Sequence record: MK568540.2
Strand: one strand, 5' to 3'
Length of the DNA: 64,000 bases
Position 1 is the stretch's first letter. Each line of letters starts with the position of its first letter. Both the position numbers and the translations under genes were made by a program. The notes beneath the pieces were generated by a model. It saw nothing but the letters and a program-made list of their open reading frames with translations, made no database searches and was not told the DNA's origin. Shown in pieces: positions 7,094 to 32,514 of the stretch.

Positions 7094-7376
7094 CCTTCCC
7101 TGCGCCTCCTGCAACCGTATCGCCGCATGTTAACGTGTCACCGATACGGATTGCATTGCTCCCCTCGATAAACACTTTCGAACTGAACGATGCTGCGCTA
7201 CCTGCGTGGCAATCGTGGTTCGGAACTGTATTACAGTGCGTTACGTGAACTAAATTATCTTTAGACAACGCAGGTTTACCTTGTACTGTTACTTTCCCAC
7301 TCCCACCCGTTACTACTGTTGGCGGGTATGTCCCATGACCTGTTGTTGGTTCATCTGCACCTGCTAAAGCTGGCAT
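7080..7376 (-). CDS. 5.4: PAAR spike-tip protein gp5.4
   Basis: 98 aa; TTGHG..PPT, HC...H and AIRIGD.L.CGD pattern. Confidence 0.9.
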   Translation of the reverse strand: MPALAGADEPTTGHGTYPPTVVTGGSGKVTVQGKPALSKDNLVHVTHCNTVPNHDCHAGSAASFSSKVFIEGSNAIRIGDTLTCGDTVAGGAGKVTSS

Positions 7377-7861: not shown

Positions 7862-7865
7862 TCAA

Positions 7866-9083
7866 TTACCCTAGGCTCACTGTTGAACCGTCTAATGCCG
7901 CAGCTCCTGCGAGACTAAGCGTTGCGCCACCACCGTCATCACTAATTGATGACGCCGAACGTGTATAAGACGAACTAACGCTTTCTGACATCGAGCCACC
8001 GACTGTTATTGTGTAATTACCGCTGATATTCTGCGTGTAATCGCCCGTGACGTTACTTTGAACATTCCCGCCCACAGTTTGATTAACATTCCCGTCAACG
8101 TTCTGTGTGACGTTCTGATGCACTGTCTGACTAACATCTTTATCAACTGTTTGAGTAACATTCATTTCAACATGCTGATCAACATTACCCTTAACATGCT
8201 GCTTCAAATCACCATCAACTTGCTGCGTGACATTTTGCTGGCAATAGAACGTCGCGTCACCGACAACGGTTATATTCAAATTCCCTTTGATAAAGACATT
8301 CTGATCTTTTTGAACAATCTCAAAATCATCACCAACAATCTTTGTAACTTTACTACCGTCAGGGTGAATTTCTTCAAATGTTCCAGTTCGATGATACGTA
8401 TGTAAACGCTCTGCACCCTCTGTGTCATCAACCTCTCTGATGTGCCCAGATTCAGACTCGTGTACATGATTAAACGGGTACTGCGCTGCGTACGGCGTCT
8501 CTTTCTCGTTATAAACGGGACCGTTTTGATTATAACCCGCAATCGGAATGTCTTTCTCTTCGGCTGCGCGTTTACTAGAGATTATTTCATGTGGTCTATA
8601 CACATAAGGCGCATCGCCGCTATCAAAATCGCTCTGAGATTGATTTTCATCATACACATCGGGGTCTACATCGTTTCGAGCTAAACGGTTTGTATCGGGC
8701 TCATTAAGTTTATCAGCTAACGGGTATTTTTCGTTTGGGTCATTAAACCCCTTACTGCCGTTAGCTAATTCTTCAGGTATACCAGGCAAAACACCCATCG
8801 CAATTGCATCTTGATGCAACTTATCTCTGAAAAAGCCGAATACCCATGTACCTTCAACTACCCCTATTGGTGTATTACCAATCCCGTTCATCGCAGCGTT
8901 ATCAAGCGACTGCATAGGGTGAACCCAAAGAAGTTCTTCAGTTCGAATACCTTGATTTGAACTTTTCTTCTCGGGGTGAAACCCAATCATTCTGACTTTA
9001 ATTCTACCGAGTTTGAGTGGGTCGTTTGTTCTATCTTCAACAACACCAGTCCACCAATCAAACCCATCTAATCCCATAAACAT
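7866..9083 (-). CDS. 5: Baseplate central spike gp5 (OB fold plus beta-helix; no lysozyme domain apparent)
   Basis: WWTGVVEDRTNDPLKLGRIKVR, YPFNHVHESESGH, VxGxxxxx beta-helix repeats. Confidence 0.92.
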   Translation of the reverse strand: MFMGLDGFDWWTGVVEDRTNDPLKLGRIKVRMIGFHPEKKSSNQGIRTEELLWVHPMQSLDNAAMNGIGNTPIGVVEGTWVFGFFRDKLHQDAIAMGVLPGIPEELANGSKGFNDPNEKYPLADKLNEPDTNRLARNDVDPDVYDENQSQSDFDSGDAPYVYRPHEIISSKRAAEEKDIPIAGYNQNGPVYNEKETPYAAQYPFNHVHESESGHIREVDDTEGAERLHTYHRTGTFEEIHPDGSKVTKIVGDDFEIVQKDQNVFIKGNLNITVVGDATFYCQQNVTQQVDGDLKQHVKGNVDQHVEMNVTQTVDKDVSQTVHQNVTQNVDGNVNQTVGGNVQSNVTGDYTQNISGNYTITVGGSMSESVSSSYTRSASSISDDGGGATLSLAGAAALDGSTVSLG

Positions 9084-18353: not shown

Positions 18354-18620
18354 ATGTCACAACAAACTGCTGAACAAGTAATCGAACAGAAAGACGCACA
18401 AATCAAAGATCTTAAAGTGCGTACCTTTGACCTACAAGAGACTCTTCAAGAAGAGCGCAATTCTTTTGGTCAGTTCGTGGGTGTACTAGCTCAACTACTC
18501 GATTTCGATCAGACGCAAGCAAGTTCTCTACAGAACTACGTTGACGAAATCGCAATTCTAACCGGTAAAGCTGAACGTCCTGCTGAAGGCGACGGCGAAC
18601 AAGAAAAAGACGCTGAATAA
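18354..18620 (+). CDS. 57A: Tail fibre chaperone gp57A
   Basis: Coiled coil with LKVRTFD motif; position after gene 1. Confidence 0.8.
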   Translation: MSQQTAEQVIEQKDAQIKDLKVRTFDLQETLQEERNSFGQFVGVLAQLLDFDQTQASSLQNYVDEIAILTGKAERPAEGDGEQEKDAE

Positions 18621-19075
18621 TGAAACTATCTAAGTTCCTTGAAAGTCAGGGAACTTACGTTGGTATCAGATTAGACGAGGCGAGTAAGCAAGAGTTAGTT
18701 CGATTGCAGAAAACGCTTCGTCTAAAAAATCCGTTAGAACCAGATAAATTTCACGTGACTGTGCTTTATAGTCGTAAGCAAATTGATGTACCTGTTGTCG
18801 ATACCACTTTCGTTGCTACTGTTGAACATATCGACTGTTGGAAAACGCAAGACGGCAAATATGCAGTTGTTGCTAAGATGGTATGTCCAGAACTTGTAGA
18901 ACGTCACGATGATCTTATCTCTATCGGTGGTACTCACGACTACCCTGACTATACCCCTCACGTTACGTTGTCTTATGACGACGCGATCACACCTATGCCC
19001 GTCAACGCTGAAGTTCGGCTTGTTGATGAATATCTTGAACCACTTGATTTAAATTGGGTTAATAGTAATGACTGA
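18620..19075 (+). CDS. 57B: gp57B / Acb1, 2H phosphodiesterase (anti-CBASS)
   Basis: Two HxT motifs (HVTV, HVTL); WKTQDG, THDYPDYTPH and EYLEPLDLNW are shared with T4 57B. Confidence 0.9.
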   Translation: MKLSKFLESQGTYVGIRLDEASKQELVRLQKTLRLKNPLEPDKFHVTVLYSRKQIDVPVVDTTFVATVEHIDCWKTQDGKYAVVAKMVCPELVERHDDLISIGGTHDYPDYTPHVTLSYDDAITPMPVNAEVRLVDEYLEPLDLNWVNSND

Positions 19076-19322
19076 TTTATCTACTGAAGCAGTATTAAAG
19101 AAGTACAATGAAGCTCCCGAAACTCTAACTACTGAAGAGAACGTTGTATTATTGACGTATATCATCGGTATGCAGACCGATCAGATTGCTTTACTTAAAG
19201 AGAACAACAAACTTTACGATAAAGCTATCACTGAGCTTCAGCAAGCTGTATCTCAGCTTCAAATCAAGCACGCTGCGCTTGAACGAGGTGAGACAGAAAG
19301 CGGTATCATTCTTTCAGTATAA
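19068..19322 (+). CDS. Hypothetical coiled-coil protein
   Basis: 84 aa ORF coupled to 57B. Confidence 0.7.
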   Translation: MTDLSTEAVLKKYNEAPETLTTEENVVLLTYIIGMQTDQIALLKENNKLYDKAITELQQAVSQLQIKHAALERGETESGIILSV

Positions 19323-19339
19323 AAACTTTCAAAAAGTTG

Positions 19340-19367
19340 TTGACTTATTCTGAAAAGCATGTAGAAT
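19340..19367 (+). promoter_or_regulatory. Early promoter
   Basis: AAAAAGTTG-TTGACT..TAGAAT. Confidence 0.7.
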
Positions 19368-19431
19368 GTATTTCATCGAGTCGAGAGACAGAACACAAAC
19401 TTTCAACTCGATGAAATATTTGAAAAAGTTG

Positions 19432-19459
19432 TTGACTTACACTGAAATGATGTTAAGAT
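19432..19459 (+). promoter_or_regulatory. Early promoter driving the RNA island
   Basis: AAAAAGTTG-TTGACT..TG-T-TAAGAT. Confidence 0.7.
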
Positions 19460-19467
19460 TAACACAG

Positions 19468-19576
19468 TTGATTAAGCGAGCTAAGTTCATCGTTCTCGCC
19501 TCTTATTGAAGATGAACAATATTGATTAAGCAGACTAAACTCATCGTTTCTGCCTCTTCTCTGAAGATGAGTAATA
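19468..19576 (+). repeat. Two tandem 54/55-nt repeats, each an H-type pseudoknot
   Basis: Copy 1: GCGAG/CTCGC plus GTTCATC/GATGAAC. Copy 2: GCAGA/TCTGC plus ACTCATC/GATGAGT. Both stems show compensatory changes. Confidence 0.85.
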
Positions 19577-19721
19577 TTTTAAATGTGCGTTAGCCGCAAT
19601 GAATACATGGAGCCAGTATACGTTCTGGCGTGCAGGGATACTCTTAGCGGACGAATTCTCAATCAAAAACTAGCTGAGTTAAAATTCGCTCAGTCGGCGT
19701 GCAAGTAGCGCACATTTAAAA
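19577..19721 (+). ncRNA. Orphan structured RNA
   Basis: 13-bp terminal stem TTTTAAATGTGCG/CGCACATTTAAAA with inner stems GCCG/CGGC and GCCAG/CTGGC. Confidence 0.55.
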
Positions 19722-19739
19722 TATCGAGAGTACATTGGT

Positions 19740-19862
19740 CGAGTGTTGGTGTAGTGGCAGCACACGTAGCATACTGTAATCAGACATGATTATATTCAGC
19801 AACCAATTTACGCATATCATAGGGAGATCGTGGGAACGGTTCGATTCCGTTACACTCGACCA
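19740..19862 (+). ncRNA. tRNA-like RNA E1 with CAGCAA module inserted in the anticodon stem (loop ATAGGGA)
   Basis: Acceptor CGAGTGT/ACACTCG, D-arm, T-arm AACGG-TTCGATT-CCGTT, ACCA end; 49-nt insert after position 28; 21-bp leader/trailer duplex 19726-19872. Confidence 0.8.
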
Positions 19863-20121
19863 ATGTACTCTCACTAACAAAGCGAGGTGGACAATTTGAT
19901 TGTATATCTTCTCGCACTAGTATTCATCGTCCTTTTTGCCTTGGACATTGAAGAAGAAAAGGTGCGCATTCATACTTTTGCGCTAATCACATGCGAACGG
20001 GTCATTCATCCCGTAATTAAAGCGCACGATTCCAGATTGTGTTTTGATTAGCTAAGGCAAATATAACTAGAGGATTTTTGGTGCTTGTGGTTAATCACAA
20101 GCACTCTCAAGAACATATTGA

Positions 20122-20243
20122 GCAGGGTTGGTGTAGTGGCTAGCACACGTAGCATAAACGCAAGCTGTTAAGTTTGTATTCTGCAATCAATTTAGCATAT
20201 CATTTCCAAGATCGTGACGCAGGTTCGAATCCTGCACCCTGCT
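20122..20243 (+). ncRNA. tRNA-like RNA E2 with CTGCAA module (loop ATTTCCAA)
   Basis: Cloverleaf with insert after position 28; 17-bp extended acceptor duplex 20112-20252; no encoded CCA. Confidence 0.8.
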
Positions 20244-20260
20244 CAATATGTTTTTACATT

Positions 20261-20373
20261 GGTGAAGTTAGTTCAGTAGGTTAGAACGCCGGCCAAAAAA
20301 CGAAGTCTGATAAGATTTCATTCTGCATTCACATGCACGCCGGAGGTCGCAGGTTCGAGTCCTGCACTTCACC
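20261..20373 (+). ncRNA. tRNA-like RNA E3 with CTGCAT module in the anticodon loop
   Basis: GGTGAAGT/ACTTCACC acceptor, CCGGC/GCCGG anticodon stem, canonical T-arm. Confidence 0.8.
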
Positions 20374-20383
20374 TTCAAATTCT

Positions 20384-20508
20384 GGAGAGTTAGCTCAGTC
20401 TGGTAGAGCAAAAGAATGTTAAAGAATACTGACAAGCATTCATGCTGCAAACCTTAATAACTAGGTAAATCTTTTTGTCACGTGGTTCAAATCCCGTACT
20501 CTCCACCA
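20384..20508 (+). ncRNA. tRNA-like RNA E4 with CTGCAA module in the anticodon loop
   Basis: GGAGAGT/ACTCTCC-A-CCA, GCTC/GAGC D-stem, AAAGA/TCTTT anticodon stem. Confidence 0.8.
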
Positions 20509-20522
20509 ATTTTCGAGGGTTT

Positions 20523-20891
20523 ATGAATAAGTTTAATGACATAAATGACGAACTTGATTGTATATTGCATCGTTGTGAGATTGTAAAGCGCAATCTTCGA
20601 AAATATTGTACATTTGCTGTTGAAATGCAGTATAGACTTATGATAAACTTCATTGGCATGGGTTGCTATCAACAAGTTCTGCCGATATTAGACAATCTAA
20701 ATTATCACCCTGATACAAGTCAGTTTGATAATATTGAGATTATGCAAACTATAAAAGAATTGATGAAATGTGCAGATAAGCTCGATTTGCTGCATCAACA
20801 AGACGCATTTCATCAAATTAAATCGACTGCTCGTATTACAGAAGAAGCAAACATCTTCGCTGCGAAAGTTGGTCGATTTCTAGAGAAATGA
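20523..20891 (+). CDS. Hypothetical protein
   Basis: ATG 20523 after SD GAGG (the track's GTG start overlaps E4). Confidence 0.65.
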   Translation: MNKFNDINDELDCILHRCEIVKRNLRKYCTFAVEMQYRLMINFIGMGCYQQVLPILDNLNYHPDTSQFDNIEIMQTIKELMKCADKLDLLHQQDAFHQIKSTARITEEANIFAAKVGRFLEK

Positions 20892-20892
20892 T

Positions 20893-20970
20893 GGCCCTAT
20901 AGCTCAACACGGTTAGAGCAACCGACTCATAATCGGTAGGTTACAGGTTCGAGTCCTGTTGGGGTCACCA
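20893..20970 (+). tRNA. tRNA-Ile2/Met (CAT)
   Basis: Canonical cloverleaf, loop CTCATAA, CCA; GGCCC start like ileX. Confidence 0.92.
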
Positions 20971-20990
20971 AAATAAATTGAAAAAAGTTG

Positions 20991-21019
20991 TTGACAGACG
21001 TTTCATCAACGTGTAGTAT
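20991..21019 (+). promoter_or_regulatory. Early promoter
   Basis: AAAAAAGTTG-TTGACA-N17-TAGTAT. Confidence 0.8.
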
Positions 21020-21049
21020 ACACATTATCAACTACACGAGGAAAACATT

Positions 21050-21280
21050 ATGTCACATAAATTGCTAGTTATCACATCAATGCACGGTTGCTACGTCGAT
21101 TACGATTTCAGAACTGAAATGTTTGACAGATACATGTGTGATGTTGTGATTCCGAACGACTCTGTTGTTTTGTACTCGGGTACAGTTTCAATAGATGAAA
21201 TTCGAGCAGTTGCGAACGAATGTTACGCTGACATCAAGATTGAAGAAGTCAGTGATGATGTTTTTGACAGCTATCTTTAA
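21050..21280 (+). CDS. Hypothetical protein
   Basis: SD GAGGA; 76 aa. Confidence 0.7.
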   Translation: MSHKLLVITSMHGCYVDYDFRTEMFDRYMCDVVIPNDSVVLYSGTVSIDEIRAVANECYADIKIEEVSDDVFDSYL

Positions 21281-21284
21281 AAAT

Positions 21285-21524
21285 GCCGCTAACTGGCGTA
21301 CAATACACAGTGTATTCCCAACATTAGTGCAGACGTAGGCTCGCAACCTACGTTGGTACCGAATCACTGGGACCGAGTAGAAAGTGCATGTGAGATGTCG
21401 AAGTCTTGTATGTAGAAATAACGCTCGGCTGCTCTGAAATGCTGATTAGCTCTTACTTCGAAACTCTAATTGGGTGGAAGAGGTGTTGTGTTTGACGTGT
21501 GTTCGATTCACACGAGCGGCGCCA
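21285..21524 (+). ncRNA. tmRNA-shaped RNA (tRNA-like ends, ~190-nt internal domain)
   Basis: GCCGCT/AGCGGC-G-CCA acceptor; T-arm CGTGTG-TTCGATT-CACACG; long H2-like helix (ACAATAC/GTGTTGT, TTCC/GGAA, ATTAG/CTAAT). Confidence 0.65.
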
Positions 21525-21537
21525 AGAGGAAATTATA

Positions 21538-22059
21538 ATGAAACCATTGAAGTTCGTTGAGGCGTTCTCTAAAGAAGAACGTGCTGCTATGACGATTGAA
21601 GAACGTAGCAGACTTCGTAAAATATATAACGAACGCTATCAAGAGTATGTTGATAAGTACATCAATGTATTCACTCGAAAAGACTTTCGAAGAGAGCGTT
21701 GCTGGGTTATTCTTGCACGATGTAAAAAGACTGGTGAAATCATCGGTCGAATTGAAAATAGTTTTAGTATGGGATGGTCTAAAGAGCGTGTTCGTGTTAT
21801 TCGACCGTATCTAAACGGTAATTTCACGGGCGATGACCGCTTCTCTAAAGCTGAGTACAACAAAGCGTGTGCTGAGTACATAACTCATCATGAGAAACAA
21901 GTAAAGTCTCTCAGAGAAGCTTACAAAGACACTCACGACGTTTTCTTATCTCGTGTGGGTAGTAAGAACTGTCCTGTTTCTATTGATTGGGATACGTATT
22001 ACAGTAAAAAAGACAAACGAAACTTTGAATATCGAAATTTGAAATTCAAAGTTAAATAA
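21538..22059 (+). CDS. Hypothetical basic protein
   Basis: ATG 21538 after SD GAGGA. Confidence 0.7.
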   Translation: MKPLKFVEAFSKEERAAMTIEERSRLRKIYNERYQEYVDKYINVFTRKDFRRERCWVILARCKKTGEIIGRIENSFSMGWSKERVRVIRPYLNGNFTGDDRFSKAEYNKACAEYITHHEKQVKSLREAYKDTHDVFLSRVGSKNCPVSIDWDTYYSKKDKRNFEYRNLKFKVK

Positions 22060-22064
22060 TTCAT

Positions 22065-22180
22065 AGTCGGGTAGCTCAGTGGTAGAGCACGAAGAATGAT
22101 ACTGACAAGTATCGCTCCAGCACTCCTTCAATTGCCTGTTAAGCACGTGGTCGCTGGTTCGAATCCAGCCCCGACTACCA
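22065..22180 (+). ncRNA. tRNA-Asn(GTT)-like RNA E5 with a 41-nt CAGCAC module inserted between positions 28 and 29
   Basis: Removing the insert restores CGTGC-CTGTTAA-GCACG; acceptor AGTCGGG/CCCGACT-A-CCA. Confidence 0.85.
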
Positions 22181-22206
22181 TTTTTGATAAACTAGTGAGG
22201 TATAAC

Positions 22207-22443
22207 ATGAGCGGAACATTTAATATCAACAAAACGTTACTGACTCCGAAACAATTGCGCAATCTAACAGATGAGCGTCTGAATGAATATCGCAAGTCGT
22301 TTCGTAAGCCTCTTGGGTTTTTGAAGCATCTGAACGATACAAACGAATTGACTTCAGATCAGCACAAGAAATTCGTTGAGCTTAATAAGCACTACAACGA
22401 CGAAATTCTTGCTGAAATGAACAAGCGAAAACACTTAGGTTAA
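22207..22443 (+). CDS. Hypothetical protein
   Basis: ATG 22207 after SD GAGG; reads on the plus strand. Confidence 0.6.
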   Translation: MSGTFNINKTLLTPKQLRNLTDERLNEYRKSFRKPLGFLKHLNDTNELTSDQHKKFVELNKHYNDEILAEMNKRKHLG

Positions 22444-22556
22444 TAAAATCGCAGAAAATTGATAATTTTTTTCAATTTTCTGCGAAAATACCGCAAATCG
22501 TCAGATTTAGTGTTATAAGTACTATAAAGAAACAAAACAAATTTTAATTTTTATTT

Positions 22557-22681
22557 CAAGAGAGCATTCAATGACGCATTCGTTTACACATTCATCTGAG
22601 ACATTACGCAGCGATTTTCTGCGCTCAGAATTCGTGTATCTAGCGAATCCGATTGCGAACCAGAAGTGGGATACCCTCTTG
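22557..22681 (+). ncRNA. Orphan structured RNA
   Basis: Nested stems CAAGAG/CTCTTG, TACAC/GTGTA, CTGAG/CTCAG, CGCAG/CTGCG; followed by a terminator. Confidence 0.5.
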
Positions 22682-22713
22682 TAGTCCGATAGTATAACAT
22701 AGAAGTATACTTG

Positions 22714-22738
22714 AGGACGCAAATAGCGTCCTTTTTTT
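22714..22738 (+). terminator. Rho-independent terminator
   Basis: AGGACGC-AAATA-GCGTCCT followed by a T-run. Confidence 0.85.
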
Positions 22739-22815
22739 ATGGGCGTAAGAAAGTTAAGAAATTTTGTTTAACGTACTTTGATTACAGAGTATGATAAACA
22801 AAGTTAAAGAACAAA

Positions 22816-22889
22816 CGGGACGTGGCGTAAAGGTAGCGTTCATGCTTTGGGAGCATGTGGTAAGAGTTCGAGTCTCTTCGTCCCGACCA
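22816..22889 (+). tRNA. tRNA-Pro (TGG)
   Basis: Cloverleaf, loop TTTGGGA, CCA. Confidence 0.92.
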
Positions 22890-22898
22890 ATTTAAAAT

Positions 22899-22975
22899 CC
22901 GTGACTAGCTCAATCTGGTAGAGTACTCCGTTTGGGGCGGAGAAGTTAAGCGTTCGAATCGCTTGTCACGGACCA
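22899..22975 (+). tRNA. tRNA-Pro (TGG)
   Basis: Cloverleaf, loop TTTGGGG, CCA. Confidence 0.9.
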
Positions 22976-22982
22976 GTTTAAT

Positions 22983-23058
22983 GCCCGATTAGCTCAATTG
23001 GAAGAGCAGCGCCCTACGAAGGCGAAGGTTACAAGTTCGAATCTTGTATTGGGTGCCA
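22983..23058 (+). tRNA. tRNA-Arg (ACG)
   Basis: Cloverleaf, loop CTACGAA, CCA. Confidence 0.92.
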
Positions 23059-23261
23059 GTTAGTGTTGTTTGATTGAAGCTCGCTTTCGCACATTCCCGA
23101 AACTGCTTCTACGAATTGATACGCTTAGGACCGTATCTCGTTAAGTACTGTCGAGATGATAGAATTTAACGAACTTTTCATAAATTAGTGTTTATGATGT
23201 CTTGAGCGAGTGTTAATATTAACACATAGAAAATGAAAACGTTAAGTTCTTCAAAATAAAT

Positions 23262-23392
23262 TCAAAAAGATGTTTACAACGATATAAACATCGTGTACAA
23301 TGAAGAAAAGCGAAACATCATTCAAAATCGAATGAAAAGTTTTTCAAAAAAGATGTTTACAACGATAAAAACATCATGTACAATGAAGAAAA
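23262..23392 (+). promoter_or_regulatory. Duplicated strong early promoters
   Basis: Two near-identical ~48-bp copies: AAAAAGATG-TTTACA-N17-TACAAT-GAAGAAAAG (-35 boxes at 23273 and 23356). Confidence 0.85.
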
Positions 23393-23411
23393 GAAGTTTA
23401 CAAAATTTAAT

Positions 23412-23488
23412 GCGCAAGTAGCCCAATTGGCAGAGGCACTGGTCTTAGAAACCAGAAGTTAAGAGTTCGAATCTCTTCTTGCGTACCA
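23412..23488 (+). tRNA. tRNA-Leu (TAG), short variable loop
   Basis: Loop CTTAGAA; 5-nt variable region. Confidence 0.9.
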
Positions 23489-23489
23489 A

Positions 23490-23564
23490 GCACCCTTAGC
23501 TTATCAGGAAAAGCGGCGGATTGAAGTCCCGCAGTGCTCGGTTCGATTCCGAGGGGGTGCACCA
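23490..23564 (+). tRNA. tRNA-Phe (GAA)
   Basis: Loop TTGAAGT with an A31-C39 mismatch. Confidence 0.85.
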
Positions 23565-23653
23565 TATTATAGCTTGTTTGTAAGAGTTAAATCAAGCAAG
23601 GGGTTTTAGTTTTGGGTTATTTAGCAAACGCTCTTAACGTGAAAATCAAATCT

Positions 23654-23728
23654 GGGTCGTTCGTATAACGGTAGTACATCTGGCTTTTAACCAGACCGGT
23701 GAGAGTTCGAATCTCTTGCGACCCACCA
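23654..23728 (+). tRNA. tRNA-Lys (TTT)
   Basis: Loop CTTTTAA, CCA. Confidence 0.92.
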
Positions 23729-23739
23729 TATTTTATAAT

Positions 23740-23816
23740 GCGTCGGTAGCTCATCATGGAAGAGCAGGGAGCTTTTAACTCTCAGGTGTCTGGTTCGAGT
23801 CCAGGGCGGCGTACCA
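23740..23816 (+). tRNA. tRNA-Lys (TTT)
   Basis: Loop CTTTTAA, CCA. Confidence 0.9.
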
Positions 23817-23879
23817 AATTAGATACATTGTGTATCGCTTTGCAAGTTAGATAGCTTGCAAAGCAATATACAATTTAAT

Positions 23880-23954
23880 TCTCCCGTGGACTAACGGTAG
23901 GTCATCACCCTTTCAAGGTGAAGTGCGCGAGTTCGAATCTCGTCGGGAGAACCA
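23880..23954 (+). tRNA. tRNA-Glu (TTC)
   Basis: Loop CTTTCAA, CCA. Confidence 0.9.
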
Positions 23955-23960
23955 AATTAC

Positions 23961-24046
23961 GGAGCGTACGTCTCAAGGTGAGACAGGGGACTGTAAATCC
24001 CTGACCCTTAACGGGTAGAGAGGTTCGATTCCTCTACGCTCCACCA
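23961..24046 (+). tRNA. tRNA-Tyr (GTA)
   Basis: Loop CTGTAAA, long variable arm, CCA. Confidence 0.92.
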
Positions 24047-24051
24047 GTTTT

Positions 24052-24139
24052 AGCTTGCATACTGCAATTTAACTTAATCTATTGATCGCTCGGCGAACTC
24101 AGTTCAGACAGCGATAAACAGACCAAAGAACGCAAGCTG
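24052..24139 (+). ncRNA. Free-standing CTGCAA-motif RNA
   Basis: GCTTGC-ATA-CTGCAA ... GCAAGC-TG with inner ATCGCT/AGCGAT stem. Confidence 0.75.
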
Positions 24140-24148
24140 TTGAATAAT

Positions 24149-24225
24149 TGCGGGGTAGAGAAGTGGTCATCTCGTCGGTCTCATAAGCCGGAGAACGCTG
24201 GTTCGAATCCAGCCCCACGCAACCA
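24149..24225 (+). tRNA. tRNA-fMet-like (CAT)
   Basis: GCGGGG..TCGGT-CTCATAA; extra A in the acceptor 3' strand. Confidence 0.85.
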
Positions 24226-24271
24226 AATTTATTTCGACTAAATATTGTTTTACGCAATAAGGAAAATTACA

Positions 24272-24514
24272 ATGAAAACATTTGATGAATTCATTACCGA
24301 GTCGAAAGATGTTACTTTCGGAGTTTCTGGCTCACTTTTTAGTGGTGCAATGGATAGAGAGAGACATCGAAACATGATGCAAAAACTTGGCGCTGTTAGA
24401 GACACCAAATCAAAATCACAAGATAATGTTTGGGTTGTCAGTCAAGCGAATGCTGATGCAGTTGAAGAATATCTTAGTCAGTTTGATAAGCTGATGTGGG
24501 GTAGACACAAATAA
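24272..24514 (+). CDS. Putative internal head protein with capsid-targeting sequence
   Basis: Starts MKTFDEFITE (T4 CTS MKTYQEFIAE); CTAAATA late-like promoter at ~24238. Confidence 0.7.
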   Translation: MKTFDEFITESKDVTFGVSGSLFSGAMDRERHRNMMQKLGAVRDTKSKSQDNVWVVSQANADAVEEYLSQFDKLMWGRHK

Positions 24515-24520
24515 TTAATT

Positions 24521-24619
24521 GGAAGGCTTAGCCGAGAGATTCTGGGTAGCGGCAACGGTCTTGAAAACCGTCGGTCACCGGGAGGTGATGTTAGGGTTCG
24601 AATCCCTAGTCTTCCGCCA
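24521..24619 (+). tRNA. tRNA-Ser (TGA)
   Basis: Loop CTTGAAA, long variable arm, large D-loop, G73-CCA. Confidence 0.9.
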
Positions 24620-24683
24620 ATTAGTTAACCGGGAAGTTTAGTCACTTAACCGATTAACACGAGCACTGAAATGTGCTCACTTT

Positions 24684-24757
24684 AGTCCCTTAGCTCAACG
24701 GTAGAGCGTGCGACCGATAATCGCTTGGTAAGAGTTCGATTCTCTTAGGGACTACCA
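24684..24757 (+). tRNA. tRNA-Ile (GAT), C33
   Basis: Loop CCGATAA, CCA. Confidence 0.88.
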
Positions 24758-24763
24758 GATTTT

Positions 24764-24837
24764 AGGGGCATGATGTAAAGGCAGCATGACGGATTCCAAA
24801 CCCGTTCGTTAGAGTTCGAATCTCTATGCCCCTGCCA
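24764..24837 (+). tRNA. tRNA-Trp (CCA)
   Basis: Loop TTCCAAA, G73-CCA. Confidence 0.88.
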
Positions 24838-24842
24838 GTTTA

Positions 24843-24901
24843 AGTAATCTTACAGCAAACAATACAAAACTTTTATTTGGAAAAAGCAAAAAGGATTACT
24901 G
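24843..24901 (+). ncRNA. Minimal CAGCAA-motif RNA carrying an anticodon-like stem-loop
   Basis: GTAATC-TTA-CAGCAA ... CTTTT-ATTTGGA-AAAAG ... GATTAC-TG. Confidence 0.8.
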
Positions 24902-24912
24902 TTTAAATTCAA

Positions 24913-24987
24913 GGGTGTGTAACTCAGAGGCAGAGTAGTCGGCTGTTAACCGACAAGTCGAGATTTCGAAATTCTCCACGCCCGCCA
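24913..24987 (+). tRNA. tRNA-Asn (GTT)
   Basis: Loop CTGTTAA, CCA. Confidence 0.88.
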
Positions 24988-24988
24988 T

Positions 24989-25064
24989 GCTTCATTAACT
25001 CAGTTGGTAGAGTGTCTGACTGTTAATCAGAGAGTCGTTGGTTCGAGTCCAACATGAAGCGCCA
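24989..25064 (+). tRNA. tRNA-Asn (GTT)
   Basis: Loop CTGTTAA, CCA. Confidence 0.92.
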
Positions 25065-25132
25065 AATTCGGAGAGTCACTACCGTTAAGTGTGAACTTGA
25101 AAAACAAAGCAACTACTTTAAGTTGTCTTTGG

Positions 25133-25208
25133 GGAGCCGAGGTGTAAGTGGTTGCATGTCTCCCTGTCACGGAGAAGGTAGCGGGTTCGAAACCCGTCGG
25201 TTCCGCCA
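25133..25208 (+). tRNA. tRNA-Asp (GTC)
   Basis: Loop CTGTCAC, CCA. Confidence 0.92.
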
Positions 25209-25227
25209 AAGATAATTTAAGAACAAT

Positions 25228-25301
25228 TGGGGATTGGTGTAAAGGCAGCATAACGTACTTTGAATGCGTTGGTATCAGTTCGAATCTGTTATCCCCAGCC
25301 A
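25228..25301 (+). tRNA. tRNA-Gln (TTG)
   Basis: TGGGGAT start, loop CTTTGAA, CCA. Confidence 0.9.
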
Positions 25302-25310
25302 AATACCGAA

Positions 25311-25424
25311 GAGTGTTTTCAGCAAACAATTTACTAATATTCTTATCGGAAAGAAATGTTTAGGGTTCGATTCCCTTTCAGTGTTGGTATCACTGGTCTG
25401 GACGACGCTAGTAATAACACTCAG
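25311..25424 (+). ncRNA. Circularly permuted tRNA-like RNA closed by the CAGCAA motif (YrlA-like topology)
   Basis: Order: GAGTGT-TTT-CAGCAA, anticodon-like hairpin, T-arm AGGG-TTCGATT-CCCT, closed acceptor CAGTG/CACTG, D-like hairpin, ACACTC-AG. Confidence 0.8.
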
Positions 25425-25428
25425 TAAC

Positions 25429-25504
25429 GCCCTGATAGCACAACTGGCAGTGCAGCTCACTTGTAATGAGCAGGTTCGCGGTTCGAATCCGTGTCAGGGC
25501 ACCA
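25429..25504 (+). tRNA. tRNA-Thr (TGT)
   Basis: Loop CTTGTAA, CCA. Confidence 0.92.
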
Positions 25505-25528
25505 TTTTCAAACAACTGCGAGAATAAC

Positions 25529-25738
25529 ATGAACTATATTTCTGTATGGTGTGAATATGACATTGGTGGGGATTTCGGTGGCAACAATAACGAAGATGTT
25601 TTTTCCGTTAGTGAAGAATTATCTAATGAAGAAGTTGAAGCAAAAGTTGCTGAATATATTTCTGACATTGTTAGTGAGCCGATTGAAGAACTTGAAGGTT
25701 TATACGGTTGGGAATATATTTCAATCACACAGTTGTAA
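25529..25738 (+). CDS. Hypothetical acidic protein
   Basis: ATG 25529, MNYISVWCEY. Confidence 0.6.
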   Translation: MNYISVWCEYDIGGDFGGNNNEDVFSVSEELSNEEVEAKVAEYISDIVSEPIEELEGLYGWEYISITQL

Positions 25739-25745
25739 AAAATAT

Positions 25746-25820
25746 GGGCCGTTAGCTTAATTGGGAAAGCGCCTCACTTGCAATGAGGAAGATAGGGTTC
25801 GACTCCCTGCGTGTCCACCA
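25746..25820 (+). tRNA. tRNA-Ala (TGC)
   Basis: Loop CTTGCAA; irregular acceptor/T stems; CCA. Confidence 0.8.
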
Positions 25821-25894
25821 AATTTCGAACACATGAGCGTAGACTCTCTTTACTACCATCGTCTACACTAGTTCATGGTTCGAATCTTTTCAAT

Positions 25895-25970
25895 GCGCTG
25901 TTAGCTCAATTGGAAGAGCACGTCCCTTCTAAGGATGGGGTTATGAGTTCGAATCTCATACGGCGTGCCA
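25895..25970 (+). tRNA. tRNA-Arg (TCT)
   Basis: Loop CTTCTAA, CCA. Confidence 0.92.
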
Positions 25971-26033
25971 TATTAAGCTCTTATCATGCGACGAATGATA
26001 CTTTGCTTCGGCATATCACGAGCATGGTGAGAG

Positions 26034-26262
26034 AGACAATATACAGCAAACAATTGAAATTACTTAAAAGAAGTGATGATCTTAACCTGGGCTGATTTTA
26101 ACCTGAGCTTGCTTAGGCGCAGCTTGAAAGGAAAGATTCTCTCTGTCTAGAAATAGTCAGATAGGCGCGTCGCTGAAACAGACGATATTTGCTTGTTGAG
26201 AATCAATAAGCTAGTCAACTCCGATTTATGCAAAAGACGAAAAAACACTTCGGTATTGTCTG
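26034..26262 (+). ncRNA. Large CAGCAA-motif RNA L1
   Basis: GACAAT-ATA-CAGCAA ... ATTGTC-TG; several hairpins; 3' block shared with L2. Confidence 0.8.
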
Positions 26263-26266
26263 TACT

Positions 26267-26485
26267 TAATTCGTCGGAAACGACACTGTAGCCGAAAGGC
26301 AAGATACGCTAACTTAGATGTTAGCAGCGATATAGGATGTATCGCGTGGCATTATTATGAACGTTTCTAGTCATCGTCATGTAAAACAATCAAAACTAAG
26401 CAGAGGTAACAGTACCCACTATGTGGTTCCTCACTCAGACCATGAATATATGGTGTCAGCCAGTGTGCGATTAAATGAGTTAATT
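26267..26485 (+). ncRNA. Orphan multi-hairpin RNA with GNRA loops
   Basis: GTCG-GAAA-CGAC, GCC-GAAA-GGC, GCTAAC/GTTAGC, GCGATA/TATCGC, ACCAT/ATGGT. Confidence 0.55.
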
Positions 26486-26494
26486 ACTGCAATT

Positions 26495-26570
26495 GGTGAT
26501 GTAGCTCAAGTGGCAGAGCAACGCTTTCATACGGCGTAAGATCCGATTTCGAGTATCGGTGTCACCTCCA
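26495..26570 (+). tRNA. tRNA-Met (CAT)
   Basis: Loop TTCATAC, T73-CCA. Confidence 0.85.
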
Positions 26571-26759
26571 AATTCAAAAACAAAGAGGTTACGAAGCATG
26601 ACTACTTTACACTAAGCAAGGGCAACATACGCGATAAAATTCGATATGTTGAAAAATGTCTCGCGAATGAGACCAACCCGTTCTTTATAAGAACACTTAC
26701 TGTAGAGCTTACGAATCTACGTGCAATACGTGATTTGTTTGACGCTTCAGATTAACAAT

Positions 26760-26833
26760 GCGGGTATGATGTAATGGTAGCATGACGTCCTTCCAAGTCG
26801 TTCGTCTCGGTTCGAGTCCGTGTACCCGCTCCA
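26760..26833 (+). tRNA. tRNA-Gly (TCC)
   Basis: GCGGGTA start, loop CTTCCAA, T73-CCA. Confidence 0.9.
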
Positions 26834-26839
26834 AATTTT

Positions 26840-26913
26840 GGTCCCTTAGTATAATGGCAGTACGTCTCTTTTACACAGAGAAAGAAGTGGCTCGATTCCA
26901 CTAGGGACTACCA
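26840..26913 (+). tRNA. tRNA-Val (TAC)
   Basis: Loop TTTACAC, CCA. Confidence 0.88.
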
Positions 26914-26936
26914 TTCTTTATTATGAGAAATAAATT

Positions 26937-27176
26937 ATGACTCCTGTATTACTTGAAACTCACGAATACGTAAACCCGAATCAAATTGAAAAGCTTCAAC
27001 GCATGGACAGACTTATGTTTGACTGTTGGCGCGCTGGGTTTAAGCGTAACAAGATTCTTGAGCGTGCTCTTGAAATTGAGTCTTCAACGACTGAAGCAGA
27101 TATCGAAATTTATTTCAAAAACATGTTTACAAGAGAACTATCGCCTGATAGAATCTACTTAAAGAAAACTGATTAA
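26937..27176 (+). CDS. Hypothetical protein
   Basis: 79 aa ORF with SD-like GAGA. Confidence 0.65.
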   Translation: MTPVLLETHEYVNPNQIEKLQRMDRLMFDCWRAGFKRNKILERALEIESSTTEADIEIYFKNMFTRELSPDRIYLKKTD

Positions 27177-27302
27177 TGCACAGGAAGCGCATTCGTTTGA
27201 TGTCGTAAACATCCCAAAGTATTGCAGGTAGCGACGGCGGTGTTGCTAGTAGATTTATCTATTTCTCCAAGACATAATGCAAACTTTTAAGTGTACTTTG
27301 GT

Positions 27303-27379
27303 GTGGCAGTGGGTGAAGTGGAAATACCCCCGGGTTGTGATTCCGGAAGATGCGGGTTCGATCCCCGTCTGTCACCCCA
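27303..27379 (+). tRNA. tRNA-His (GTG)
   Basis: Loop TTGTGAT, C73-CCA. Confidence 0.88.
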
Positions 27380-27391
27380 AAGTACATTTAT

Positions 27392-27465
27392 GCTCGAATC
27401 GTATAATGGAAGTATGACGGATTGCAAATCCGCAGGTCAGGGTTCGATTCCCTGTTCGAGCTCCA
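27392..27465 (+). tRNA. tRNA-Cys (GCA)
   Basis: Loop TTGCAAA, T73-CCA. Confidence 0.9.
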
Positions 27466-27467
27466 AT

Positions 27468-27544
27468 GCGCACGTGGTCCAATTGGCAGAGGCATGAGGC
27501 TTAAAATCTCAGGGATGGCGGTTCGAATCCGCCCGTGCGTACCA
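27468..27544 (+). tRNA. tRNA-Leu (TAA), short variable loop
   Basis: Loop CTTAAAA; 5-nt variable region. Confidence 0.9.
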
Positions 27545-27548
27545 AATT

Positions 27549-27649
27549 CTAGCATAAGCCGCGTTCTATACGAAGCTAGACTACCGCCGTTGAAAAACGG
27601 TCTCAGCCGAGCGAAAGCTGACAGGTGTTAGGGATTAAAGAGTCGCGGC
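27549..27649 (+). ncRNA. Pseudoknotted orphan RNA
   Basis: TCTAGC/GCTAGA crossed by GCCGCG/CGCGGC; inner GCCGTT-GAAA-AACGGT and TCAGC/GCTGA. Confidence 0.55.
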
Positions 27650-27660
27650 AGTTTATTCAA

Positions 27661-27737
27661 GCCCAACTAGTCCAATTGGCAGAGGCACTAGTTTCAAACA
27701 CTAGGAGTTCCGAGTTCGAATCTCGGGTTGGGCACCA
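27661..27737 (+). tRNA. tRNA-Leu (CAA), short variable loop
   Basis: Loop TTCAAAC; 5-nt variable region. Confidence 0.9.
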
Positions 27738-27743
27738 AATTCA

Positions 27744-27868
27744 CTTAGCAACGCGAATCGAAAGAGAGTGGATAGACCTGCTAAGAGTCCCGCTAGGTCT
27801 TTAAATTATCTAAAGTGGATCTGCGAAGCGCGTGGCACACGTCAGCAATAAGAGCAAATATGTGTCTG
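27744..27868 (+). ncRNA. Pseudoknot followed by a minimal CAGCAA-motif hairpin
   Basis: CTTAGC/GCTAAG crossed by AGACCT/AGGTCT; then GGCACA-CGT-CAGCAA...TGTGTC-TG (27834-27868). Confidence 0.65.
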
Positions 27869-27905
27869 AGCATGAGAGCAGCATGCCATTAATTGATGAG
27901 ACGTT

Positions 27906-27994
27906 GGAAGCATGGTCTAAAGGTATGACAGCACCCTGCTAAGGTGTCGGACGTTAATAGCGTTCTCTGGGTTCGATTCCCAGTGCTTCCGCCA
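27906..27994 (+). tRNA. tRNA-Ser (GCT)
   Basis: Loop CTGCTAA, long variable arm, G73-CCA. Confidence 0.92.
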
Positions 27995-27999
27995 AATTC

Positions 28000-28260
28000 G
28001 CAATAAGACATTGTACAGCAATCATTACAAAATCAAAGCAAACTTTAATAGTAATGAGGCGCACTAGCTGCTTTCTCAGTGATGACGTGAGCCTGTCGCA
28101 TTCTCATGGTAGGAAATGACCATTAAGACGGTGTTCGTACTGTCAAACGAAATAGGACTCATGCCGAATCATGAGTATTTTTCCGATGAGAAACATCGTT
28201 ATAGTCAATTGAGATTTAAGGAAAGACGATAAAACATTTCTCGAATGTCTGTGTATTGCA
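28000..28260 (+). ncRNA. Large CAGCAA-motif RNA L2
   Basis: GACATT-GTA-CAGCAA ... AATGTC-TG, outer GCAATA/TATTGC stem, many hairpins, 3' block shared with L1. Confidence 0.8.
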
Positions 28261-28266
28261 CATTAG

Positions 28267-28290
28267 AACCTGCCTTGAGCAGGTTTTTTT
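28267..28290 (+). terminator. Terminator ending the RNA island
   Basis: AACCTGC-CTTGA-GCAGGTT followed by a T-run. Confidence 0.85.
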
Positions 28291-28380
28291 GTTTATGGCG
28301 TTTGATAATTGATATAGTCTAAAGAAACAGTTAGATATGATTCTAAATACAGATGAACTCAAATCAATTGGAGAAATGTC

Positions 28381-28587
28381 ATGAGTGATAAAACATTCGA
28401 TAAGTTCATGTTAGAACTAGAAGAACAAAAGCCAGAAGATAAAAAGAAAAAGAAACGTTCAGTAAAAGATCGTGTCAAGTCTGGTGCAAAGAAAGCTGGT
28501 AAAGCTGCGAAAACTGGTGCTAAAGTAGCCGCTGGTGCTGCTGCGGTAGGTCTTGCAACTCAAGTAACAAAGAAATCTAACGAATAA
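28381..28587 (+). CDS. Lys/Ala-rich small protein, putative internal head protein
   Basis: MSDKTFDKFMLELEE CTS-like start; late-like CTAAATA at 28344. Confidence 0.65.
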   Translation: MSDKTFDKFMLELEEQKPEDKKKKKRSVKDRVKSGAKKAGKAAKTGAKVAAGAAAVGLATQVTKKSNE

Positions 28588-29593: not shown

Positions 29594-29941
29594 ATGTTTG
29601 TAATGATTGATGATATGCGTGATATCGATAAGTTCACTGCGCCTGAAATTTCCGCAGATCAGAAGCTTGTTTTGCGTACGTATGAAGACGGTATGAAATT
29701 CGTCAAACATACGAATCTTACAGATATTACTTTATTCATGGACAATGATCTAGGCGGTGCTCTTGGTCATGAGGGATATGATATTCTCTCTCATGCAATT
29801 GATCATCGTAACTTCCCACGCACAGTTGTTCTAGTAACGAGTAACCCTGTTGCTCACTCTAAGATGACTATGATGTTGATGAGTACACTTCAATATAAAC
29901 GTGTGGGTTCTATCTTTATGAGGCAAGATACATGCACTTAA
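29594..29941 (+). CDS. Cyclic-phosphate-processing receiver-like domain protein
   Basis: VMIDDMR and FMDNDLG...EGYDIL, V..SNPVA pattern; early promoter TTGACT-N17-TATCAT at 29532. Confidence 0.65.
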   Translation: MFVMIDDMRDIDKFTAPEISADQKLVLRTYEDGMKFVKHTNLTDITLFMDNDLGGALGHEGYDILSHAIDHRNFPRTVVLVTSNPVAHSKMTMMLMSTLQYKRVGSIFMRQDTCT

Positions 29942-30992: not shown

Positions 30993-31035
30993 GACATTTT
31001 ACAGCAATTAATTATGAGGAAATGAACAATGTCAG
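30993..31035 (+). promoter_or_regulatory. CAGCAA motif enclosing the SD and pairing with the start codon of the DUF2828 gene
   Basis: GACATT-TTA-CAGCAA-...GAGG...-AATGTC-AG; the ATG at 31029 lies in the 3' strand. Confidence 0.85.
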
Positions 31036-32501: not shown

Positions 32502-32514
32502 GTAAGAGGTGAAA

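Follow-up and report, generated by a model that had tools for sequence, protein, structure and literature searches.

Chimeric tRNA/Y-RNA-like genes of Vibrio phage Va3 belong to a phage-restricted family linked to a Ro60-like protein

We describe two structured RNA elements, E1 and E2, encoded at the head of the tRNA cluster in a 64,000-nt stretch (hereafter, the window) of the genome of Vibrio phage Va3 (MK568540.2), a KVP40-like member of the Straboviridae. Both are members of a family of tRNA/Y-RNA-like chimeras that is confined to phages, is linked to a Ro60-like protein, and had not been labelled before. Most likely they are neither normal nor defective tRNAs but Y-RNA-like partners of that protein, since the module inserted in their anticodon stem recurs in about 100 phage tRNA-like genes, often beside a gene for a Ro60-like protein. 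We put at about one in two the probability that the two RNAs do not decode and instead serve the Ro-like protein of the phage as tRNA-shaped, Y-RNA-like scaffolds. The analysis establishes the structure, the family, its restriction to phages, its linkage to the Ro-like gene, and the predicted Ro60-like fold; that E1 and E2 bind the protein, stay unspliced and play the biological role proposed below is what we infer.

Architecture and conservation of E1 and E2

E1 (19726–19872, + strand) is a Pro-like tRNA-shaped RNA (C1-G72, A73, G37), and E2 (20112–20252, +) is its Gly-like paralog (G1-C72, C2-G71, U73); they share the long invariant blocks GUUGGUGUA, AGCACACGUAGC, GCAUAUCAU, and AGAUCGUG. 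A reading of the DNA that preceded this analysis (the sequence-only reading) had presented both as cloverleafs with a 49-nt insert after C27-G28, and joining the flanks upholds this, the result being CGAUC-AUAGGGA-GAUCG for E1 and CGAUC-AUUUCCAA-GAUCG for E2. Upon removal of the insert, ARAGORN calls a tRNA-Pro(AGG) for E1 and a tRNA with the four-base anticodon UUCC for E2; with the insert kept, neither is detected by ARAGORN (default settings) or by the Rfam tRNA model RF00005, even at E<=1.

The E1 insert (19767–19815, +; 49 nt), located between positions 28 and 29 (28/29), consists of a 5′ spacer, a hairpin that we call helix H (19777–19792, +; UAAUCA-GACA-UGAUUA), the motif CAGCAA (19797–19802, +), and a 3′ spacer. 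It is followed by the lower anticodon stem-loop (19816–19830, +), AUC-AUAGGGA-GAU, and then by C42-G43. The E2 insert (20150–20198, +), likewise of 49 nt and placed after C27-G28, contains helix H at 20161–20176 (+; CAAGCU-GUUA-AGUUUG, with one G.U pair) and the motif CUGCAA at 20181–20186 (+); the lower anticodon stem-loop (20199–20214, +) reads AUC-AUUUCCAA-GAU, with an 8-nt loop, before C42-G43.

Both elements are closed by perfect leader/trailer duplexes, as had been claimed from the sequence. In E1, positions 19726–19746 are the exact reverse complement of 19852–19872; this duplex of 21 bp is not extendable, lengthens the acceptor stem by 14 bp, and buries the A73-CCA (19859–19862; CCA at 19860–19862) in base pairs. 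In E2, a perfect, non-extendable 17-bp duplex (20112–20128 with 20236–20252) extends the acceptor stem by 10 bp, and the gene has no encoded CCA. At the gene level, the single-stranded 3′ NCCA needed for charging is therefore paired in E1 and lacking in E2, while nearly all of the 28 canonical tRNAs of the window encode CCA. The RNAfold z-scores against shuffled sequences are −7.2 for E1 and −4.6 for E2.

The region 19400–20600 is present in 56 phage records at 78–100% identity; across distinct KVP40-like genera, identity is 98–100% for E1 and 78–100% for E2. Covariation was assessed in 15 E1/E2 sequences from nine phages, with 500 shuffles as controls. Pairing holds in 99.8% of the paired cells, and compensatory changes are seen in 21 of 41 pairs, a value reached by none of the 500 shuffles; slid controls collapse. 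The compensatory pairs fall in the extended acceptor duplex (11/21), the insert hairpin (6/6), and the T stem (4/5). The extended duplex has six mismatches: five read as G.U on the + strand, which argues for selection at the RNA level, and the sixth is a U.C, in phage VS2. The fold energies, the compensatory changes, the failure of shuffles and slid controls, and the G.U mismatches thus demonstrate that the E1/E2 fold is real and under RNA-level selection, and the covariation argues against neutral decay. The D-stem, CG/CG, and AUC/GAU pairs are invariant among KVP40-like phages, and support for them comes from the wider family only, where anticodon stems differ yet stay complementary across the insert.

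Several other proposals for the E1/E2 sequences were examined and set aside. A GUAGC/GCAAY helix with an alternative D stem, suggested by RNAalifold, was dropped as a general feature, as the family has an A-rich 5′ spacer at this place; the alternative D stem is also countered by paralogous phage tRNAs, which use a GUGU/GCAC D stem. Pairing of the insert segment ACCAAUUUAC, which resembles the 3′ trailer, with the leader was dropped because it shows no covariation in E2 orthologs. Reading the insert as a promoter or MotA box yields no consistent −10/−35 match, and covariation favours RNA. The hammerhead-like CUGAYAAG sits in a hairpin loop, without the G8 and GAAA elements and without an Rfam match, and the likeness of CUGACAAAG to P22/lambda boxB is off by one nucleotide and has no nut-site context.

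The anticodon loops behave differently from the scaffold. As the sequence-only reading had pointed out, both loops begin with A32, and that of E2 has 8 nt. Among orthologs, the E1 anticodon is AGG or UAG, the loop being AUAGGGA or, in phages K566 and F86, AUUAGGA; the E2 anticodon is UUCC, UCAU, UCU, or UUC, in the loops AUUUCCAA, AUUCAUAA, AUUCUAA, and AUUUCAA, and the loop has 8 nt in most phages. E1 and E2 hence do not show the combination of a 7-nt loop and an anticodon stable across orthologs that marks a canonical tRNA. In one near-identical group of the wider family, variable columns make up 3 of 3 in the anticodon vs 11 of 115 elsewhere. Variation of the anticodon columns on a near-identical scaffold suggests that the anticodon stem-loop is a fast-evolving surface that mimics particular tRNAs for a tRNA-binding partner. 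Near-identical Glu-like scaffolds in the IMG/VR database (loci L032, L055, L065, L073, and L118) carry the anticodons UUC, GUC, UCU, and GUU, and the 8-nt loop AUUCAUAA recurs in unrelated phages, namely, in E2 of KVP40 and in locus L068.

The insert module in the window and in other phages

The insert is a discrete module: a 6-bp helix H capped by CU-GAYA-AG, with CAGCAA exactly 10 nt after the hairpin core. To describe it independently of the window, we built a covariance model, R1, from 22 unrelated IMG/VR modules with KVP40-like sequences excluded. In the window, R1 yields exactly five matches at 22–33 bits, the next one scoring 13.5 bits. These are E1 (19763–19806, 32.8 bits, E=7e-6), E2 (20147–20190, 27.6 bits, E=1.6e-4), and three further copies, C, D, and F, so that the inserts marked out by the sequence-only reading are recovered by a model made without them. 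The three further copies coincide with oversized Rfam tRNA matches that are labelled tRNA-Pseudo-5, -4, and -3 in the KVP40 record and intron-containing tRNAs in the phi-Grn1 record. All five copies share C-G and U-A pairs around the GAYA loop, followed by YNGCA(A) after 10 nt.

Copy C (tRNA-Pseudo-5; 20262–20373, +) scores 56 bits with the Rfam tRNA model and 32.5 bits with R1, and its 5-bp anticodon stem closes a junction of the module hairpin and a second hairpin. Copy D (tRNA-Pseudo-4; 20384–20505, +; 50 bits with the Rfam tRNA model, 22.4 bits with R1) encodes CCA and has the module 3′ of a loop-like segment AUGUUAA. Copy F (tRNA-Pseudo-3; 22065–22177, +; R1 29.1 bits) carries a 41-nt module at 28/29 and without it has a clean tRNA-Asn(GUU) shape; it has A73, while both canonical Asn tRNAs of the phage have G73. 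The insert boundary is unambiguous in E1, E2, and F. In D and F, the anticodon is readable and is GUU in each case, which makes them duplicates of the two canonical tRNA-Asn genes. Anticodons in other copies that are redundant with canonical tRNAs or non-standard, together with 8-nt loops and A32, are signs of a non-decoding role. The earlier suggestion that E1 and E2 are unlikely to be translating tRNAs is accordingly judged probable, given A32, the 8-nt E2 loop, the anticodon changes among orthologs, the duplex-locked ends, and the redundant anticodons of D and F.

A search of Rfam (at the gathering score, and at E<=1 over 19000–28500) returned tRNA and a sub-threshold YrlA match only, with no ribozyme, intron, or riboswitch. 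This sole YrlA match of the window (20345–20409; 32 bits, gathering score 69) spans the 3′ half and the next 5′ half of two tRNA-like genes. Nor does the module resemble a group I intron, which has a core of at least about 200 nt and sits in the anticodon loop, as the inserts are 41–54 nt long and lie in the stem at 28/29. Two further features were observed in or next to the tRNA cluster (28 tRNAs called by ARAGORN at 20893–27994). A tRNA-like gene at 25746–25817 (+; Rfam 44.9 bits, loop CUUGCAA, anticodon UGC) is missed by ARAGORN. A half-module, AAUAAG-N8-CAGCAA (27997–28025, +; R1 13.5 bits), lies directly 3′ of the last cluster tRNA and is followed by a hairpin CAUUAC...GUAAUG; arrays in IMG/VR are headed by similar core-less CAGCAA starts.

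To find further members of the family, we used the pattern CTGAYAAG-N10-GCA-N20-46-GTTCRANTC, which matched 111 stretches in IMG/VR, the majority being clear tRNA genes on diverse, mostly large, phage contigs. About 100 tRNA-like genes from diverse phages carry the module, most often in the 5′ strand of the anticodon stem at 28/29, and most of the carriers encode CCA. Beyond what the pattern requires, they share a 5′ A-run, a third pair conserved as A-U, and a C and an A ahead of the GCA, which makes CAGCAA; the spacing from core to GCA is a constant 10 nt. Helix H has a covariation score of 0.60 vs 0.19 in shuffles (0/500 reach the observed value), and the excess of G.U over A.C in it (16 vs 4) indicates an RNA on the sense strand. 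In 20 well-parsed members of the 28/29 type, the inserts are 42–54 nt long and the position is compatible in all 20; the loops have A32 in 15, U33 in 20, and 8 nt in 5 of them. A smaller set of copies, including C and D of the window, carries the module at approximately positions 31–39. In 596 Gb of genomes from bacteria and archaea, the same pattern matched 81 times, compared with about 117 by our own random estimate, and no module-bearing tRNA was among the matches. On this evidence, the module family is widespread and restricted to phages. An E1/E2-specific pattern found only KVP40 and VH7D in IMG/VR, and a query with the neighbouring gp57B protein found only four loci; neither added diversity.

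In some phages, the cores are arranged in arrays, and base pairing links the sequence 3′ of a core with that 5′ of the following one (32/36 cases; chance about 0.007 per case). This pairing uses 5–6 nt after one core and 5–6 nt before the next; a core's own flank is not the partner. The payloads between cores are either small hairpins or a tRNA 3′ part (29–73), a short linker, and a tRNA 5′ part (1–28), whose acceptor and anticodon-stem strands match each other and not those of linear neighbours; un-permuted, these payloads are called by ARAGORN as tRNA-Met, tRNA-His, and tRNA-Cys. It follows from the flank pairing and the tRNA calls that a single structure underlies both kinds of locus: the hairpin-type genes, to which E1 and E2 belong, and the array units are circularly permuted versions of it, with helix H either capped by GAYA (hairpin type) or left open (array type). 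The arm order of the open form (stem, T arm, acceptor hairpin, D arm, stem) is that of YrlA. In Felixounavirus, tRNA-free mini-units AG-S-UUA-CAGCAA...S′-CU lie just 3′ of the Ro-like gene, and the module is thus not tied to tRNA exons. In the arrays of L022 (− strand, 7350–8000), L079 (8900–9350), L019, L021, L038, and L047, permuted units alternate with hairpin-only units of about 60 nt; all of them are joined through CUGAUAAG cores and begin right after the stop codon of the Ro-like gene.

The acceptor extension is only 0–1 bp in 31 of 33 family members, but a long terminal duplex recurs in one unrelated copy (L117/phiWae14). Aeromonas phage phiWae14 has two unannotated module-bearing tRNA-like genes (L212, 12917–12960 and 13057–13100); one of them has a 13-bp acceptor extension like those of E1 and E2 and is identical to IMG/VR locus L117. 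Given that other phages carry permuted relatives, E1 and E2 might conceivably be circular RNAs or consist of two pieces. We found no description of the element in the literature on phage tRNA introns, permuted phage tRNAs, and DUF2828, a scope that did not include the KVP40 genome paper and the RNA-repair paper of Burroughs and Aravind.

A Ro60-like protein as candidate partner

Particles of Ro60 and Y RNA are conserved from bacteria to humans. The window encodes a 478-aa protein (open reading frame, ORF, 31029–32465, +) with DUF2828 (E=2e-29) and DUF7788/vWA (E=2e-46) domains, which does not match the Pfam TROVE model. Its AlphaFold (AF2) model has a mean predicted local distance difference test score of 76.5 and a predicted template modelling (TM) score of 0.77. 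The top 11 Foldseek matches in PDB are all Ro60/TROVE structures (probability 1.0, TM 0.45–0.60), from Xenopus, human, Deinococcus (Rsr), and Thermus phage phiLo (Ro60), followed by vWA domains. The DxSxS of the vWA metal ion-dependent adhesion site (D275, S277, S279) is invariant. The protein is thus predicted by modelling to fold like Ro60, i.e., as a HEAT-repeat ring with a C-terminal vWA domain.

The link between this protein and the module comes from the gene neighbourhoods. When the ORFs of 71 IMG/VR module loci were clustered, the top cluster was a 460–575-aa protein found at 26 of the loci, always on the same strand as the cores, and arrays often begin right after the stop codon of its gene. 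The window protein is 49% identical to it. Homologs of the DUF2828 type are encoded in 711 of 50,697 isolated phage genomes, including all KVP40-like Vibrio phages; the gene is typically beside tRNA clusters, and some homologs are already annotated as "Ro-like RNA binding protein". The distance between module and gene is 80 nt in Campylobacter phage F355 and 2.5 kb in Aeromonas phage phiWae14, and in mycobacteriophage Snenia a full-length YrlA match follows the Ro-like homolog by 130 nt.

Other genes recur around the Ro-like gene. In the window, it is flanked by genes for a cREC_REC protein (29594–29941, +; cyclic-phosphate processing receiver) and a DUF458 RNase H-like protein (32509–33039, +), and a cREC gene is also found near the Ro-like gene of Enterococcus phage H1 (L214, 7604–7978). 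A Band-7/SPFH protein and a P-loop kinase (AAA_33/KTI12-like) recur beside the Ro-like gene and module tRNAs (IMG/VR loci L121, L112, L114, L123, and L058; L209, 1759–2691, in mycobacteriophage Snenia), and together with these resemble an RNA-repair gene set. In Listeria phage A511, a match to ROOL RNA (L210, 4507–5058; 87.5 bits, gathering score 99) lies between the tRNA cluster and the Ro-like gp57.

The closest known RNAs are the YrlA-type Y RNAs of bacteria and phages, tRNA mimics encoded near a Ro60-type gene (Chen et al., 2014, PMC4201824; Rfam RF02553). YrlA resembles E1 and E2 as a tRNA-mimicking non-coding RNA with a D arm, a T arm, and an acceptor-like stem, encoded near a Ro60-type TROVE+vWA gene; a D arm and a T arm are present in E1 and E2, and in both systems a long stem brings the 5′ and 3′ ends together. 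The YrlA arm order is found in the permuted relatives, and it is a homolog of the window protein that the YrlA match follows in Snenia. In contrast to YrlA, E1 and E2 have their arms in the usual tRNA order and retain the whole anticodon stem-loop. Their motif, CU-GAYA-AG plus CAGCAA, lies in the anticodon stem, whereas that of YrlA, GNCGAA, lies in the terminal stem; the window protein is of the DUF2828 branch, and the Rfam YrlA model misses both E1 and E2.

Among phages, the Ro60 of Thermus phage phiLo, whose structures are among the top fold matches of the window protein, binds the phage Y-like RNAs Yrl1 and Yrl2 as well as host polynucleotide phosphorylase (PNPase) (PMC12135203). Gp130 of Bas63, a Ro60-like protein encoded upstream of tRNAs, counters the ppl defence system, and its authors guessed, as a suggestion only, that Y RNAs are among the "tRNAs" (bioRxiv 10.1101/2024.10.10.617714). 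Both phages, like Va3, encode a Ro60-like protein and have small structured RNAs or tRNA genes beside it, and the proposed roles are PNPase hijacking or countering host defence. Unlike E1 and E2, the Yrls of phiLo are not tRNA chimeras but have a stem-bulge-stem form and a CGAA motif, and no RNA partner is defined in Bas63. The T4 tRNA cluster contains RNA C and RNA D (species 1 and 2), stable RNAs of 119–139 nt, of which RNA C, like E1 and E2, ends in a tRNA-like T arm and acceptor (PMC3014915, PMC9697503); inspection by eye shows no sequence similarity and no CUGAYAAG/CAGCAA module in them. In Lak megaphages, the "enigmatic" tRNA introns (Devoto et al., 2019, PMC6784885) also make oversized tRNA genes, which tRNA finders for bacteria report as pseudo-tRNAs, and Lak phage has a distant homolog of the Ro-like protein (26% identity). 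We rejected them as the same element, for which there is no evidence because their supplementary intron sequences do not contain the CTGAYAAG core.

We propose that E1 and E2 would be stable non-decoding RNAs whose anticodon stem bears a dedicated protein-binding arm, formed by helix H closed by CU-GAYA-AG and by the single-stranded CAGCAA 10 nt further on. This arm would most likely dock the phage's own Ro60-like protein, and the RNAs would then be the phage's version of Y RNAs. The effector or bait function would fall to the L-shaped body with its exposed and rapidly changing anticodon stem-loop, through which the Ro-like ring may be tethered to tRNA-recognising proteins, for example, host defence nucleases that cleave tRNAs, enzymes of tRNA repair, or nucleases of the PNPase type. 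With its long leader/trailer duplex, each RNA would be barred from the pathway of RNase P, CCA addition, and aminoacylation and would have its ends shielded.

A number of observations weigh against this proposal. The CUGAYAAG/CAGCAA motif differs from the known Ro-binding motif (GNCGAA of YrlA) and is located in the anticodon arm, not in a terminal stem, and Rfam YrlA (RF02553) matches neither E1 nor E2. In the window, the Ro-like gene is 11 kb from E1, on the same strand, across the tRNA cluster. The linkage itself is confounded, as the Ro-like gene adjoins tRNA clusters generally and the module lives in tRNA-like genes, and no module was found within 6–9 kb of the Ro-like gene in Listeria phage A511, a Yersinia jumbo phage, Enterococcus phage H1, and Acinetobacter phage ME3. 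Finally, removal of the insert always restores a perfect 5-bp anticodon stem, almost always at 28/29, just as a spliced intron would.

Gene setting, alternative explanations and implications

The non-coding stretch that holds E1 and E2 is preceded by a sigma-70-like promoter match (19432–19459, +; TTGACT-16-TAAGAT with an upstream TG), which is a consensus match only. Between this promoter-like site and E1 lie two ~55-nt direct repeats with a hairpin in each (19466–19575, +; conserved, non-coding) and a conserved non-coding segment of about 140 nt (19583–19722, +) with a 13-bp closing stem UUUAAAUGUGCG...CGCACAUUUAAAA; neither has an Rfam or R1 match. Just 5′ of the non-coding stretch, the T4 gp57B-like ORF 18620–19075 (+) strongly matches Acb1 (PF23474, E=9e-46), a 2H phosphoesterase directed against CBASS (cyclic oligonucleotide-based antiphage signaling system); its RefSeq label is "RNA ligase".

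It is the restoration of a perfect anticodon stem at a fixed position that makes splicing a serious alternative, which we consider possible though unlikely. The module would then be a new phage-specific tRNA intron, protein-dependent or self-processing, excised at 28/29 with ligation of the exons by phage or host enzymes to give functional tRNAs, quadruplet decoders included; permuted units would mature via a circle, as in Cyanidioschyzon merolae, and the Ro-like protein would be a chaperone or unrelated. Joined flanks do give canonical tRNAs in every tested case, and the 28/29 position is fixed across different tRNA bodies. Several carriers have textbook loops (CUGUUAA, CUUUUAA, CUGCUAA), most encode CCA, and kinase, RNA-ligase, phosphoesterase, and cREC genes occur near module loci. 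However, the module is also found without surrounding tRNA exons, the E1/E2 anticodons are unstable among orthologs or sit in 8-nt loops, and the ends of both elements are duplex-locked. The anticodons of D and F are redundant, and the A73 of F is the wrong discriminator base for Asn by an established rule of tRNA identity. As to mechanism, the insert is too short for group I and matches no known ribozyme family at E<=1, and no splicing endonuclease (EndA/Sen) was seen among the clustered neighbours of module loci, whole genomes having been left unscanned. The archaeal and eukaryal introns of the bulge-helix-bulge (BHB) type and the split or permuted tRNAs (Nanoarchaeum, Caldivirga, Cyanidioschyzon merolae) are comparable in that inserts of ~40–50 nt occupy non-canonical anticodon-stem positions, normal and circularly permuted genes coexist, and an intron helix joins the junctions. 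In contrast to them, the module occurs in bacterial viruses with no such endonuclease among its clustered neighbours, and no BHB motif is evident by eye in E1, E2, or family members, although no dedicated BHB search was made. A related and rather doubtful version takes the module as an RNA-level joining element that directs excision and ligation at 28/29, with or without the Ro-like protein, in intron-containing, split, or permuted tRNA genes with exchangeable anticodon stem-loops. If true, it would be a bacterial-virus counterpart of the archaeal BHB split/permuted tRNAs and would allow anticodon re-programming, four-base anticodons included, on a constant tRNA body; a spliced module would constitute a new intron class.

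The suggestion of the sequence-only reading that the two elements serve as decoys for anticodon nucleases is improbable. As free-standing baits or sponges for such host enzymes, they would need no Ro partner, with the loop mimicking the target and the insert making the RNA uncleavable or inhibitory. Hypervariable anticodon triplets on a constant scaffold would fit such a bait, the anti-CBASS Acb1 gene just upstream points to an anti-defence neighbourhood, and the family anticodons GUU, GUC, GUA, UCU, UUC, CAU, and UUU overlap those of tRNAs cleaved by anticodon nucleases; yet the helix H/CAGCAA module, the tRNA-free copies, and the linkage to the Ro gene are left unexplained, and we know of no nuclease target in these hosts. 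Still less credible are the duplexes as RNase III sites that cut a polycistronic early transcript, possibly followed by joining into circles, with an incidental tRNA shape. RNase III takes part in processing of the T4 tRNA cluster, and here perfect duplexes of 21 and 17 bp head the cluster downstream of the promoter-like site, but a processing site needs neither the invariant D arm, the intact T loop, and the covarying T stem, nor the shared module, and 31 of the 33 family members have next to no extended duplex. Decay would be the least probable account: tRNA pseudogenes hit by a small selfish DNA (a cassette or miniature inverted-repeat transposable element recombining at the CTGAYAAG core), with functionless RNA. 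The pseudo-tRNA labels of three copies in the KVP40 record agree with it, as do the common GIY-YIG and HNH endonuclease genes near module loci and the circularly permuted relation of hairpin and array arrangements, which site-specific integration of circles would produce. Against it stand the high identity of E1 and E2 across genera, the compensatory changes in every variable helix, including the leader/trailer duplex, the long invariant blocks that have been kept, the G.U bias favouring a sense-strand RNA, and the exons, which remain perfectly tRNA-like.

With E1 and E2 as Y-RNA-like partners, the Ro-like (DUF2828) family, present in more than 700 isolated phage genomes, would gain a specific RNA as its candidate ligand, one that is open to sequence searches. 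The "pseudo-tRNAs" of the KVP40 type may be re-labelled as conserved structured RNAs. In bacterial viruses, circularly permuted tRNA-like genes appear to be uncovered, as does a scaffold with an unusually fast-changing anticodon loop. Phage tRNA mimicry, in RNA repair, nuclease hijacking, or counter-defence, is thereby opened to direct tests.

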